Shown here in pieces: positions 22,395 through 53,842 of a DNA stretch of 64,000 nucleotides. The translations under genes and the position numbers were made by a program. The notes beneath the pieces were generated by a model that did no database searches, was not told where the DNA came from, and worked only from the letters and a program-made list of their open reading frames with translations. Source of the DNA: Anolis carolinensis (Eukaryota); contig NW_026943823.1 in assembly GCF_035594765.1 (NCBI RefSeq), positions 14,322,001 through 14,386,000 on the forward strand, read 5' to 3'. Numbering within the stretch: position 1 is the stretch's first letter; each line of letters starts with the position of its first letter.

Positions 22395-22765
22395 TCAAAA
22401 TTTGCTTCGGGGTCTTGCTGGAGACAAGGTGATGGTTTCCAACATGTGATCTCCAGAAATTGGAGGACTAGGTGGCATCTCGGATGGGTTACTTGAGCCA
22501 GGGGGCATCTCAGAAGCATCCTGAAGACTCTTAGTTTCTGGGGATGATGGGTCAGCATCCACATAGGAGTTAGGGACCTGTGTGAGAGCAGATTTTAGAG
22601 GACGTGCAGGAGGATCAGCCACGTCTGGAGAGACTTCACCAGAAGCTGTCAGGCAGCGTAGTGTTCTCAGCCGATGGCGAAGATGAGGAACAATCATGGA
22701 GAAAGAGATGCACAAGAGGAAAAACCCAAAGCTGGCCGGCAAGAGCCAAATGTACTTCCAGGGAA
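22395..22765 (-). CDS. Shisa-like cluster gene 1, exon 2 (TM + Pro/Ser-rich tail)
   Basis: polypyrimidine ttttgcag|TT; VPWKYIWLLPASFGFFLLCISFSMIV TM, then basic HLRHRLR; spliced CDS 765 nt, 254 aa. Confidence 0.8.
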
Positions 22766-23982
22766 CTGCAAAAATAGAAAAGAGGTAACTCATGTATAGT
22801 TGTGTTGATGTGTGCCTTCAAGAAGATCTGAAGGAGAAGCCATCATAGGGTCTTCTTGGGAAGATTTGTGCAGAAATCTCTCACCATAGTCTTCCTTTTC
22901 TGGATTGGGCGGGGGGGGGGGGGGGGGAGATATAGTTATATAGCAATGCATTTTAATATGTTTTCTCTAATATTTATGATGATGTGTTTTTAGCTATGTT
23001 GTGAACTGCCTCGAGCTATGAGGAGAGGTTGGTAAGTAATAAGATTATATTATTAATAGTATTATGACTATTCAACCATACACCCTAGAGGTCCTTTCAA
23101 GGCATTTAGAGGCAATATTTCGTTGTACTATTATATTATTATTTTATTATTATTATTATTAAAAACTACCAAATGGTACATGGGCCTTATTTATCACTGC
23201 TGTGATAAATTGTCATATTAAAAAAATACATATTGGTACATAAAAAGTATTTTTATTGTGTCAGAAGTGACTTGAGAATATACTGCAAATCCCTTCTGGT
23301 GTGAAAGAATTGGCTGTCTACAGAGATGTTGCCCAGGGATGTGTTGCTGGGAGGCTTCTCTCATGTCCCCACAAGCTAGAGCTGACAGGTGGAAGCTCAC
23401 CCTGACCCGCTGATTCGAACCAGCAACCTTCAGGTCAGCAACCCAACCTTCAGGTCAGCAGTCCAGCTGGCACACGGGTTTAACCCGTTGCGTTACTGCG
23501 GCGCCTTATAAAGAGTATGAAATATGTGTTAATACGTCTAAAATTTTAATGTCTTGGGCATTTGCTGATTTTTTTAAAGCCCTGGAGCAAACTCATCAAA
23601 AGAAACGCAGGGATCGTCAACCTGTATTTTCCCACCAAATACACTAGTGTGGTCTTTTGGTGAACTACAGCCCCCAAGATTTGCTGGGCAAAATATCCAC
23701 TTTCCTATAAACCTGCAAAAAGTTCCTTTGCAAACTACAGCTCCCGGAAAGCTTGGTCACTATCCCTAGTAAACACTCGAGTGGAGAAAAGTGTCTGTTT
23801 GTGAACTACAGCTCCAAATCCCATAGACAGCTTGGTCTTGTCTCCTCCAAACACTAGAGTGAAGCTTCAGTTTGTGAACTGCAACTCCCCAAACCTCACA
23901 GCCTGTTAGATTATGCCTTTCAGGAAGGAGTGGGGACAGAAACCCCAAAACAAGCTTCTGAAAGGCCTGGCCTCCAACTCAC

Positions 23983-24376
23983 CTTGCTCATCCCCTGCGT
24001 CTTGGTTGGTGGTGTTCAGGAAGGCATAGTTTCCTAAGGCTCCCAAGTCAAAGCCCCCCAGATGCCTCCAGGTGGAGGTGGGCTGGTGGTCGGTGCTATT
24101 CTCCCCCTGGTTAATACGGGTGCCCTTGAGTTCCTCCAAGGTGAACTTGTCCAGTTCAACAGTGCACTTCTCTGGGTCCAAGCGCTCGGCTTGTGATGCG
24201 CAACAATAGGGCTGGCGGCAAGTACCACAGCAGAACATCGCCGTTGGATTGCTGCCCTTTGCGGGACAATGGAAAGGCCCCAATCTGGATCTAGCCACCA
24301 AGGAGTGACACATTTCCCCTTTGTTGGCCGGAGCCAGTATTAGCAGCAGGAGATATAAGCAGCAAGTCCTCTCCAT
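23983..24376 (-). CDS. Shisa-like cluster gene 1, exon 1 (signal peptide + Shisa Cys-rich domain)
   Basis: MERTCCLYLLLLILAPA signal; C..FHCP..FCCGTC..PYCC..LDPEKC 8-Cys Shisa pattern; donor G|GTGAGT, phase 1. Confidence 0.88.
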
Positions 24377-24500
24377 GGCTCAGGTGTCCACTATCCGAGA
24401 GGGCAAGGTCGAGTCTCGAAAACAGATGTCTTCGTTCGCAATCCACAATATAGCCCAACCCTCCCCTCTAGTAGCCAAACCAGAAGTTTCCAAGAGGCCC

Positions 24501-24554
24501 TTTTAAAGCTGTCCTCTGGACCTCCAACTCAGTTCAGCTGGCCTGGCCCCAATC
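24501..24554 (-). promoter_or_regulatory. Gene 1 promoter module: CCAAT box + E-box + TATA-like
   Basis: GATTGGGGCC-aggc-CAGCTG ... TTTAAAA on the coding strand. Confidence 0.6.
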
Positions 24555-51131: not shown

Positions 51132-52096
51132 CTGGAAAGAGAAGACAGACTGGTCAGAAGCAGGCAGTCTAGAGCAGGTCTTCTTCAACTTTTCCTACTT
51201 GGGACCCCTTTCTGCTTTATGTAACTCTGGGTATGTAGGTGACTATAAAATAGATATAAAAGATACAATATAAATATTCAATATACATATCAAATTATAT
51301 ATAATGTTACTAAGAATATATAATTTGATATGTACATTGAAATGGTGATGGCTTTTGATATTATTCACAATAAAAACATATTTTTAAAAATAGATATAAA
51401 ATCCAAATATTTACTGACAAGAAATCAGTGTTTGCAAGGCTTGCTAAAAAGTTAGGTTGATTTTCTTTTCTGTGATGTACAGCTGAAACATCTTCTTCAG
51501 GATCTGCAACAGATTTATGTAAATGTCTAAAACGTTGTCAAATTTTCCATGACCCAACATTGAGCTCAGGGAACCCTATTTGGGGTCAGGGCCCACAGTT
51601 TAAGAGATGCCCCCCCATATCACCGCCTTCAAGCTAAGCCTGTGTAAGCTAAGCAGGCTTGGACCCAGTTTGTGCTTGGATGGGATGCCATGGGATAGGA
51701 AGAAGACAACCAAGGAATGGTGCATTAGATGTTAAGACAGGGGTCTTTATTATAGCCTTTGAGAGCTATAATTAGTTCAACCGTCTCAAGGAGAACCTTA
51801 ACTAAGTAATTTCTCCAGGTCTGAAGCCCCTTTCAATGTTGATGTAAATATCAATCATTAACAGAATGGCCTTCCTTCTCCCCATGCAGCTAATGCCTAG
51901 TCATGTAGGTTGAAGGAGTGAGTTGGGGTCATTACAATAAGGTCAACATAATGACTAAGTAGTGATCATGAATATGCGCTCCATGCAGTCATGTCTGCCA
52001 CATGACCTTGGAGGTGTCCACAAACTGCTTAGGGGAGGAAGGTGGACTACAATTCCCAAAACTTCCAACCACCTTTACTGGAGGAGTCTGAAAGCT

Positions 52097-53141
52097 GTAG
52101 CCTACAACACAGAGAAACGTAAAAAAAAAAGAAAGTATGGTATATAGTATGTAAGTACTGTAGGTGATGTAATATTATCTTCTATATAAACAACTTTTAG
52201 TGGCACTTGTTATACAAGCTGCAAACGAAGAGAATTATGGTGTCGTATTTAACATCAGTATCAACTGGGTTTGGCTAGAAACAGTGGTAGATCATAGCCC
52301 CGTCCCTATGGAATCTCTTATGTTTAGTAGTAGTATATATTGCAATGAATCTAACAATATCTTTAGGGTTAGATGAATAGGTCTAACCCTAAAGATATTG
52401 TTAGATGACTGGTATCCAGGAGCTACTCTAAGAAGAACTTATACAGATGTTATATTAATTACTGAACTATCTTTTTCCACGCTCCAGCAACACTTGAGAA
52501 CACTATCAAGAGGGCAGTAGATTCTGCTTATTTTTCATTTACTCGATTTGACAAGATTGATATCAAACTAGAGACTACAACAGCTTTATGTTAAGGCTTA
52601 TGTGAAGGGTTGCCTTATCTGCATGTTAAGAACTGTTTATTTGACTCGATTCAATACTGAGACAGCAATTTTTATTGTTCTCAAGTCAACTATAAGACTT
52701 TGTTTTGGTTTTTATGGTTGACAATATTGGCACTTAAACCATTGATAGGAATAGTTTTTCCACAATACCTTTACAAGTGTTGCTAAATGTATTCCTTTGT
52801 GTTAAAGAACTACACTAATGTAGTGGATGAGAATACAAATAGTGGATACCTTGAGTAAAGTATTCATTGCAATATATACTACTACTAAACATAAGAGATT
52901 CCATAGGGACGGGGCTATGATCTACCACTGTTTCTAGCCAAATCCAGTTTATACTGATGTTAAATACGACACCATAATTCTCTTCGTTTGCAGCTTGTAT
53001 AACAAGTACCACTAAAAGTTGTTTATATAGAAGATAATATTACATCACCTACAGTACTTACATACTATATACCATACTTTCCTTTTTTTACGTTTTTCTG
53101 TAGATTATAGACACCTGCGTTTTTGAGTAGCCTACAACACA
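52097..53141. repeat. Fold-back insertion: ~240-bp inverted arms, 25-bp hairpin, 15-bp flanking direct repeat
   Basis: arms ~52110-52350 / 52862-53101; gtagcctacaacaca on both sides. Confidence 0.85.
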
Positions 53142-53361
53142 CCAAAACAAACTCCAAGAAATGCTGGGGAAAAACAGCTTCTGTTGGCTCATTATTATTA
53201 CTTCTACCAAATGCCCAAAGCATATGGATAGAGGTATCATTCTGAAGAGGCAGTAGGGAGACAAAAAGGAGAAAGGGCCCAGAGAAATAAATGAAAACAG
53301 TAGATACATCCAAGGTAACAGATTCACTTCATAGAAAGGCACTTGGCACCGAGACTCTTAC

Positions 53362-53842
53362 CTGGTAGGTCTTCCTCCATAGATGGGGTGGTCAACACCA
53401 AGTCCATGGTGGAGTTGGCTTGGGTGGTCCATCCTGTCTGGGTAGTCTCTTCCACTTGGGTGGTCTGTCCTATTTGGTTGGCCTGGGTTACTCCCACCAC
53501 CCCTCTGGCTTGGGCACCTCTCTCTCCTTGAGCTTTCCTCAGGCCTTGGTTGCCCACTAGGCTTCTGGTGGCCACCTTTCGCTGTTCACTGCCCACACAC
53601 TGCTTCTGGTCCAGGCGGAACTCCTTGGAGGAGCAGCAGTAGGGAGCAGCGCAAGTCCCACAGCAAAACCTGGCATCCGCTTCATCATTTTGGTCGGGAC
53701 ACTGGAAAGTGAAGACAGTGGCAGAAGAGGCACCTGCCCCATAGGACCAGAAGCGGCATATGTCGCCTGCTATTTCGGCTTCTCCAAGCTGTCCAGCTGG
53801 AGCAAAGATGAGCAAAAGGCTCCACCAGAGAGTTTTCCCCAT
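53362..53842 (-). CDS. Shisa-like cluster gene 5, exon 1 (signal + Shisa domain + Thr/Gln stalk)
   Basis: MGKTLWWSLLLIFAPAG; DIC..FQCP..ARFCCGTCAAPYCC..RLDQKQC; donor G|GTAAGA, phase 1. Confidence 0.9.

Follow-up and report, generated by a model that had tools for sequence, protein, structure and literature searches.

Five anole genes beside KLHL22 as the probable local copy of a squamate-wide tandem array of the Shisa family

Shisa proteins are small adaptors for the maturation, trafficking and degradation of receptors (Frizzled, FGFR, AMPA and GABA-A receptors), and are usually described as nine conserved vertebrate subfamilies. The family is defined by a cysteine-rich domain at the N-terminus whose pattern is C*C*CC*C*CC*C (PMC10531659). 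Its members are single-pass adaptors with a signal peptide, in which the cysteine-rich domain, the transmembrane (TM) helix and the juxtamembrane cysteines engage partner membrane proteins, and in which PY motifs bind NEDD4-family ligases (PMC10531659, PMC11399591). Shisa-1, which carries the juxtamembrane signature CCCKC, was not found in amniotes (PMC10531659). Shisa-4, Shisa-5 and the STMC6 adaptors WBP1, WBP1L, VOPP1, CYYR1 and TMEM92 are also single-pass proteins, and recruit NEDD4-family ligases through a cytoplasmic PPxY (PMC11399591). The subject of this report is a stretch of 64,000 nucleotides from the lizard Anolis carolinensis (hereafter the window), of which positions 22395-53842 carry five two-exon genes, numbered 1 to 5 by position. 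With a probability that we would put at roughly 0.78, this region is the anole's copy of a tandem array of Shisa-family genes that is old, squamate-wide and located beside KLHL22.

Gene models and the Shisa kinship of genes 1 and 5

The window was taken from assembly rAnoCar3.1 (GCA_035594765.1, record JAWQEF010000012.1; window coordinate equals record coordinate minus 14,322,000) and is free of any N. The exons of the five genes, with the strand in brackets, are as follows.

22395..22765 (-): gene 1 (LOC100555748), exon 2; Trp, TM helix, basic juxtamembrane stretch and tail, no PPxY
23983..24376 (-): gene 1, exon 1; signal-like N-terminus, eight-Cys Shisa_N domain, stalk with two NxS/T sites
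27697..27835 (+): gene 2 (LOC103280381, inverted), exon 1; short ectodomain without the cysteine-rich domain
30055..30554 (+): gene 2, exon 2; TM helix, one PPNY, 99-bp x3 tandem repeat
35348..35670 (-): gene 3, exon 2; TM helix, juxtamembrane CCCEC cluster, YGAF, C-terminal DSEVTLEA
38067..38310 (-): gene 3, exon 1; signal-like N-terminus MDRGLCC, without the cysteine-rich domain
43080..43501 (-): gene 4 (unannotated), exon 2; TM helix, RPETYGPCVS (a putative decayed PY-type motif), C-terminal SSEAIFSIEDLD
45872..46022 (-): gene 4, exon 1; MDRILL..., 50 amino acids (aa), without the cysteine-rich domain
50311..51131 (-): gene 5 (LOC103280382), exon 2; TM helix, Cys-rich juxtamembrane stretch, Pro-rich region with two PPPY, acidic C-terminus
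53362..53842 (-): gene 5, exon 1; signal-like N-terminus, eight-Cys Shisa_N domain, Thr/Gln-rich stalk

Searches were run exon by exon or with database proteins, the exons being joined only for checks of frame and length against annotated sizes. All five introns have a GT donor and an AG acceptor with a polypyrimidine tract ahead of the acceptor, and all five are of phase 1, since exon 1 of genes 1 to 5 measures 394, 139, 244, 151 and 481 nt from the predicted ATG. Translated exon by exon, the genes yield open frames of 254, 212, 188, 190 and 433 aa, the stops of which end at 22395, 30554, 35348, 43080 and 50311 and the last residues of which are SKF, DQP, KVA, DLD and TDM; for gene 2, just one two-exon solution fits the annotated length, and it is of phase 1. 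Gene 2 lies on the plus strand, and genes 1, 3, 4 and 5 on the minus strand. The junction check and the translation bear out the original prediction of five two-exon reading frames with GT-AG phase-1 introns and coding lengths divisible by three, as do the strands its claim that gene 2 is inverted. Also as predicted, exon 2 of every gene starts at or close to a Trp (V|PW, H|W, D|FRIW, G|NW and E|W in genes 1 to 5) and leads into a hydrophobic segment (best 19-mer at Kyte-Doolittle values of 2.2-3.0) followed by Cys and basic residues. By this measure of hydropathy, each of the five would have a single TM helix with cysteines near its cytoplasmic end (CCCEC in gene 3, CRLCAAC in gene 5), and each has a hydrophobic 9-mer within its first 25 residues (2.0-3.2), which is weakest in gene 4.

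Four of the five genes already exist as RefSeq models without a name. The spliced gene 5 model is letter-identical to LOC103280382 (P0001, 433 aa), that of gene 2 is identical to LOC103280381 (P0002, 212 aa), and that of gene 1 to LOC100555748 (XP_003226463.1; P0003, 254 aa), which is called with Shisa_N. Gene 3 is called as a 202-aa product whose 3′ end agrees with the model and whose start, at 38352, lies 42 nt further upstream, adding 14 N-terminal residues.

The domain that defines the family is present in genes 1 and 5. The Pfam profile Shisa_N (PF13908, gathering cut-off 22 bits) matches their first exons with 41.2 and 44 bits, respectively, and the C-C-CC-C-CC-C pattern that had been noticed in both is confirmed by the eight cysteines of each, while none of the other eight exon peptides matches a Pfam family above threshold. 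Gene 5 aligns with the mouse Shisa-3 domain (PDB 5m0w) at E 1.2e-8 with the cysteines in register, and in pairwise BLAST among the ten exon peptides the domain match between genes 1 and 5 is the only significant one. A profile of these two domains, searched against 1.84 billion representatives (E<=0.001), gave 167 matches, the best-scoring of which form a distinct type with the consensus GELCRaWtyG..aFQCP..DGADAkFCCGTC.lPYCCSS.EARLDQ..C. Thirty relatives were looked up by name, and all named members of the gene 1/5 domain type (28/28) are squamates, both lizards (Anolis, Phrynosoma, Sceloporus, Pogona, Rhineura, Lerista, Hemicordylus, Podarcis and the geckos Heteronotia and Sphaerodactylus) and snakes (Thamnophis, Liasis and Erythrolamprus). 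In several species, more than one member lies on the same contig; the automatic names are inconsistent (shisa-1, -2, -3, -5, -8-like or uncharacterized). Word-indexed searches with gene 5 exon 2, residues 1-100 of gene 5 and gene 2 exon 2 retrieved nothing beyond the anole proteins.

In a maximum-likelihood tree of the domain (127 rows and 63 columns, a short alignment of which only the main splits count), the 40 rows of the squamate type form one side of a branch with a Shimodaira-Hasegawa-like approximate likelihood ratio test (SH-aLRT) value of 99, apart from a Shisa2/3 group of 66 rows (SH-aLRT 94). One-to-one orthology of genes 1 and 5 with SHISA2 or SHISA3 is ruled out by this separate clade and by the several copies per species on one contig. 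By their sequences, genes 1 and 5 are thus Shisa-family proteins that are not 1:1 orthologs of Shisa2 or Shisa3.

The comparison with Shisa-1, -2 and -3 cuts both ways. On the one hand, genes 1 and 5 share with them the eight-Cys domain with a long insert between the second and third cysteines (PDxxDxxDA in gene 5), the single TM helix, the juxtamembrane cysteines and the two coding exons, separated ahead of the TM helix by a phase-1 intron. On the other hand, they belong to a separate, long-branched squamate clade with unrelated tails, the squamate genes have no PxxxP, no TM helix of the YLPFLLVGS type and no PDZ-type VTV or VTM ending, and squamates carry many tandem copies per genome instead of one, some of them without the domain. 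Within the five window proteins, neither PxxxP at the start of the TM helix nor a C-terminal VTV was found, and CCCEC of gene 3 is the only CCC[KQ]C-like cluster. The terminal PDZ-binding [ST]x[VLI] of Shisa-6 to -9 (CKAMP) is absent from all five, the SE[IV]TL of genes 2 and 3 being internal. To Shisa-4, Shisa-5 and the STMC6 adaptors, the array is linked by PY motifs of the form [LP]PxY, with two PPPY 8 residues apart in the Pro-rich region of gene 5 and one PPNY in gene 2; it differs from them in that its domain is Shisa-1-3-like and in that genes 1, 3 and 4 have no PPxY. The sole match to Pfam WBP-1 (PF11669), in gene 3 exon 2, reaches 14.4 bits and lies below the cut-off of 28.1.

The prediction that no canonical SHISA gene could be assigned holds for Shisa2 and Shisa3, as the tree indicates; for Shisa-1 it is less secure. 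The array could be a squamate Shisa-1 expanded in place, its genes being co-orthologs of a canonical subfamily. The tree places the squamate clade together with P0029 (salamander), P0035 and a small group without a name (the P0033 group), and P0029, P0064 and P0112 (P0033 group) carry the CCCKC signature of Shisa-1 (PMC10531659). Gene 5 retains a PDxxDxxDA version of the insert signature of Shisa-1 to -3, gene 3 has CCCEC behind its TM helix, and NCBI calls the Pogona protein P0037 "protein shisa-1". The joining branch, however, is weak (SH-aLRT 80 over the 63 columns), the squamate TM helices and tails share nothing recognisable with the amphibian proteins, the automatic names conflict with one another, and no synteny with a Shisa-1 locus was established; no neighbours lie within 10 kb at the P0029 and P0035 loci. 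Co-orthology with Shisa-1 is accordingly possible, with the odds somewhat against it, and if true the statement that amniotes are without Shisa-1 would need revision. The fuller scenario, in which squamates turned the Shisa-1 lineage into a fast-evolving array beside KLHL22 whose members repeatedly shed the ectodomain and remodel their tails, is rather doubtful; were it true, the pattern would be one typical of host-pathogen or reproductive conflict, and the locus could be a lineage-specific regulatory or defence module.

The array across squamates

The reading of the five genes as one copy of an old squamate array draws on gene order in other lizards. In Pogona, two overlapping loci (L003 and L006) span 39.5 kb with all genes on one strand, in the order: a 406-aa gene; an uncalled gene of the P0022 type, whose domain is intact and which carries PPPYAEDPPPY; the ortholog of gene 5 (P0007/P0152, 404 aa); a gene 4 ortholog that is not called; a gene of 231 aa; the ortholog of gene 1 (P0156); and P0037. 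Counted from KLHL22, the Anolis order is a relic of the P0022 type followed by genes 5, 4, 3, the inverted 2, and 1. In Phrynosoma, the gene 3 ortholog stands 7.5 kb upstream of the gene 1 ortholog P0006, and the DNA beyond gene 1 is collinear with 13.1-22.1 kb of the window. No counterpart of gene 2 was found in the Phrynosoma interval between the gene 3 and gene 1 orthologs, and gene 2 may have arisen later, as an inverted copy of the gene 2/3 type.

These orthologs have diverged far. Gene 1 is 45-47% identical to its Phrynosoma ortholog and gene 3 38-39% (exon 2 in tblastn at E 8e-14), and gene 5 is 37% identical to its Pogona ortholog over exon 1 and 27% over exon 2; synonymous sites are saturated between iguanian orthologs at 27-47% protein identity. 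The last exon of KLHL22, by contrast, aligns with its human counterpart end to end at 140 bits. The array had been predicted to be lineage-specific and rapidly diverging. The latter agrees with these identities; the former stands at the level of squamates, to which all 28 named members belong, and falls as an anole-only claim, genes 1, 3, 4 and 5 having orthologs in Phrynosoma or Pogona. Models of the same clade, array and exon structure exist for Pogona (LOC110074271, LOC110074277), Rhineura (XP_0614548xx) and Hemicordylus (LOC128335309-335323); these RefSeq relatives are all uncharacterised and inconsistently named, and those without the domain bear no family label. The array is thus squamate-wide, common to lizards and snakes, and not an anole novelty.

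No description of a squamate Shisa array or of these LOC and XP loci was found in the literature. The family itself and most of the gene models are known; new are the squamate-wide, fast-evolving array, its domain-less members, the unannotated conserved gene 4 and the possible link to Shisa-1. The locus would represent a different evolutionary mode for Shisa, a dense tandem array in which the defining ectodomain is lost in some copies and the membrane and tail module is kept. It also bears on annotation, as four genes are without a useful name, the names of their relatives contradict one another and gene 4 is missing in two species.

In Hemicordylus, a 22-kb locus (L011) holds three to four Shisa-domain exons on one strand, an array far denser than that of the anole. 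The domain exons of L011, all on one strand, are the following.

2188-2790: domain exon
3637-3933: domain exon, partial
9764-10405: domain exon
16193-16588: domain exon

At this locus a gene 4-like tail is joined to domain-bearing genes, which fits a loss of the cysteine-rich domain within or near Iguania.

In Sceloporus (L007:1-8719), a myotubularin-related gene, in a model fused with ankyrin and SOCS-box parts, stands head to head with the array member P0129, and in a caecilian (L009:1-6184) a myotubularin-related gene stands head to head with the non-squamate Shisa P0034. A myotubularin-related gene is possibly the ancestral neighbour. No MTMR or ASB neighbour is present in the anole window, where only repeats matched.

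The members without the cysteine-rich domain

All five genes had been predicted to derive from Shisa. For genes 1 and 5 the Pfam domain settles the matter, whereas genes 2, 3 and 4 have no Shisa_N match in Pfam, and so lack the defining domain, and the claim is carried there by several indirect lines. These lines make it quite likely that genes 2-4 are Shisa-derived and have lost the cysteine-rich domain, gene 4 having the stronger case and genes 2 and 3 the weaker.

The first line is structural. Nine cluster genes in four species consist of two exons separated by a phase-1 intron that immediately precedes a Trp-led TM helix, a count that includes P0002 and two unlabelled Pogona genes, each with one two-exon solution for its annotated length. 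In the fish Shisa3-type gene P0130 (L008), likewise of two exons, a phase-1 intron falls 3 residues ahead of the TM helix; all five window genes and seven other squamate cluster genes agree with it in this structure. An N-terminus of the form M[DE]RxLLCAL is common to array members. The inner genes, moreover, sit within a conserved collinear tandem array whose other members carry the domain.

The second line is provided by two Pogona genes that are annotated without a Pfam label and bear a decayed Shisa domain.

L003:519-2187: Pogona 406-aa gene; decayed Shisa domain
L006:4880-6314: Pogona 231-aa gene; decayed Shisa domain

Stripped of its signal, the ectodomain of the 406-aa protein scores 14.9 bits against the domain profile, which none of 500 shuffles reached, and keeps five of the eight cysteines; that of the 231-aa protein scores 5.9 bits (1/500 shuffles) and keeps RAW...RCPQEE. 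In a search of 4264 six-frame segments from seven loci, these two genes were the only matches beyond the intact domains. The N-terminus of the 231-aa protein (MERFLLCALV) is identical at nine of ten positions to that of the domain-bearing Rhineura protein P0009 (MERVLLCALV). With a profile of gene 3, gene 2 reaches 19.3 bits and the 231-aa gene 13.6 bits, and genes 2 and 3 share with the latter [ND]YG[AT][FL] and an acidic end of the SE[IV]TLE type; the 231-aa gene therefore belongs with genes 2 and 3.

The third line concerns the tails. Against a profile of the gene 4 tail built without the TM helix, the tail of the domain-bearing P0011 (EDLFEDFHSPFRRPATDAPHSYGACVS) reaches 15.3 bits, P0037 (PPPPYSACVS) 8.6 bits and the Pogona 231-aa gene 4.6 bits, in each case beyond all 300 shuffles. 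Since the gene 4 tail matches P0011 and P0037, the inner genes' YGxCVS appears to be a PPxY-xx-CVS that has decayed. The CCCEC behind the TM helix of gene 3 resembles the CCC[KQR]C of Shisa-1 and Shisa-2 (PMC10531659).

A number of points weigh against a Shisa origin of the inner genes, and to some degree against the array as a whole. The signal-stripped Anolis genes 2-4 and Pogona gene 4 score no better than shuffles against the domain profile. The tails of genes 2 and 3 score 2.9 bits against domain-bearing members, a value reached by 3-9 of 300 shuffles and not significant alone; their link to such members rests on one Pogona gene, that of 231 aa, and the short tail motifs were defined after the data were seen. 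In BLAST of the inner-gene exons against 160 retrieved proteins, no tail match was obtained at that sensitivity. Signal peptides and topology were judged by hydropathy alone, and PPxY is missing from three of the five genes, as noted above. Finally, when the five gene regions, each with 1.5 kb of upstream DNA, were compared by blastn, only interspersed repeats matched, in non-collinear order, so that no DNA trace of duplication is left.

These points would suit a different explanation, in which genes 2-4 are unrelated small single-pass membrane genes or in part spurious open reading frames, and their resemblances are generic or convergent. Besides the missing domain signal and the motifs picked in hindsight, it can draw on the lack of significant pairwise similarity between genes 2-4 and genes 1 or 5, and on the fact that type-I membrane proteins commonly have a phase-1 intron ahead of the TM exon. 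It fits poorly, however, with orthologs that keep open frames and splice phase, with RefSeq models for genes 2 and 3, with a gene 4 tail that matches the domain-bearing P0011 and P0037 well beyond shuffles, with a Pogona 231-aa gene that unites a gene 2/3-type tail, a domain relic and a P0009-like N-terminus, and with the collinear position of the inner genes in the array. We regard it as very unlikely, and retain the Shisa origin of genes 2-4.

The tails of the clade have been repeatedly remodelled by tandem repeats. In gene 2 a repeat covers the C-terminal third and runs on beyond the coding region.

30289-30586: gene 2 tandem repeat; unit of 99 bp, 3.0 copies, 88% matches, extending 32 nt past the stop

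Its unit encodes ...KRGDQPG[TA]DSE[IV]TLE[VG]EDA... and so triplicates the DSE[IV]TLE.ED motif. Long tail repeats also occur in the Pogona 406-aa protein, which has about 20 copies of a SPDHALEPRP-type repeat, in P0007 and in the python protein P0027.

Gene 4 calls for separate treatment. The Pogona ortholog (L003:16829-18124) has its ATG at 16829, a GTATGT donor after 16985, phase 1, an acceptor before 17694 with a long pyrimidine tract ahead, and an open frame of 195 aa. Anolis and Pogona (MDRVLLCAL...) are 50% identical over 36 aa of exon 1, with a conserved F|G junction, and 38% identical over 146 aa of exon 2 (E 4e-25), with a conserved end SSE.IF.IEDL[DE]. Because an intact frame and the splice phase are kept in both species, the comparison argues for a real coding gene. 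Public sequencing runs were consulted for transcripts, in the form of Logan contigs of four runs that were only guessed to be RNA, with very uneven cover of unique DNA; such contigs can show that a sequence is present but cannot show that it is missing. Gene 4 exon 2 is covered by contigs of three runs, X8, X14 and X9. Those of X8 (depth 54.5) and X14 (depth 18.6), from two studies and about 1.6 kb long, cover approximately 41975-43578, that is, exon 2, 1.1 kb downstream and 76 nt that continue unspliced past the predicted acceptor; they end on both sides where repeats begin.

Gene 4 could thus be a transcribed remnant or a non-coding RNA in an array of four genes, an explanation compatible with the squamate array itself. 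Several facts count in that direction and against a fifth coding member: no gene is called at this place in the Anolis record nor at the ortholog in Pogona, exon 1 has zero depth in the four runs with no 45872/43501 joint listed, and the X8 and X14 contigs read through the predicted acceptor. Set against them are the intact 190-aa frame with good splice signals, the intact and collinear 195-aa ortholog with the same phase, F|G junction and C-terminus, and the inability of contigs from runs of unknown tissue to show absence. A remnant is unlikely on this balance, and the contigs leave the splice of gene 4 unconfirmed rather than refuted; we continue to treat it as a probable coding gene.

Proposed function, flanks and other features of the window

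The topology, ligase recruitment and biological role proposed here are drawn by analogy from the family. In the plan common to the array genes, exon 1 supplies a signal-like N-terminus and the ectodomain, and exon 2, behind the phase-1 intron, the TM helix and a fast-evolving tail. An adaptor of the gene 5 type may use its ectodomain or TM helix to bind a partner membrane protein, and its PY motifs may recruit ubiquitin ligases of the NEDD4 type, with WW domains, and so control how the partner is trafficked or degraded. Gene 5 has the full set of domain, TM helix, two PPPY and acidic end, and a ligase-bringing adaptor is our best guess for it; gene 1 has the domain without a PY motif. Genes 2-4 appear to have kept the N-terminus, the TM module and tail motifs of decayed PY type (PPNY in gene 2) and of acidic SE[IV]T[LI] type, and by predicted topology expose 46-81 ectodomain residues. 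As ectodomain-less variants they might modulate or compete with full-length members, or serve as adaptors through TM helix and tail only. Nothing in the sequences points to a known function, and the value of the locus would lie in a lead for gene-family and annotation work, not in a mechanism.

The flanking gene on the right had been named as KLHL22, which is borne out by an end-to-end alignment of its last Kelch exon with residues 515-633 of human KLHL22, at the score given above and far above other natural Kelch proteins. Between it and gene 5 lies the relic of a sixth array member.

60196..61395 (-): KLHL22, last two Kelch-repeat exons (60196-60567 and 61039-61395) of a 635-aa BTB-BACK-Kelch product
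57704..57924 (-): frameshifted relic of a sixth array member, with its PPPPYSEEDP and GSLVHRNVP...STEGDE parts in different frames

A repeat-like reading frame stands beside the relic at 57990-58418, and upstream of the relic neither a TM exon nor a domain exon was found. Its intact counterparts are Pogona P0022 and a second Sceloporus gene in L007. No further array members were found in the window flanks, in the Hemicordylus locus L005 or at the caecilian locus. The C8orf48 label that the original prediction had put on the left flank was not verified, the only sizeable reading frame there (18037-18456, minus strand) having no Pfam match. In the same flank, positions 13100-22150 contain many short collinear blocks (14250-14930, 17000-17250 and 19200-19600, for example) conserved with Phrynosoma L004:11600-21555, downstream of the gene 1 ortholog; such blocks are exons of some flanking gene or else non-coding elements that have been conserved.

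Repeats make up the remaining features. The same retroelement fragment occurs twice, at 835-1356 and at 41187-41990 (weak zf-RVT match), the latter copy adjoining long AAT/ATT simple repeats that can be read as poly-Asn or poly-Ile frames, and units resembling short interspersed nuclear elements (MERRYLPAGAVPIDLLT...) recur across the whole window.

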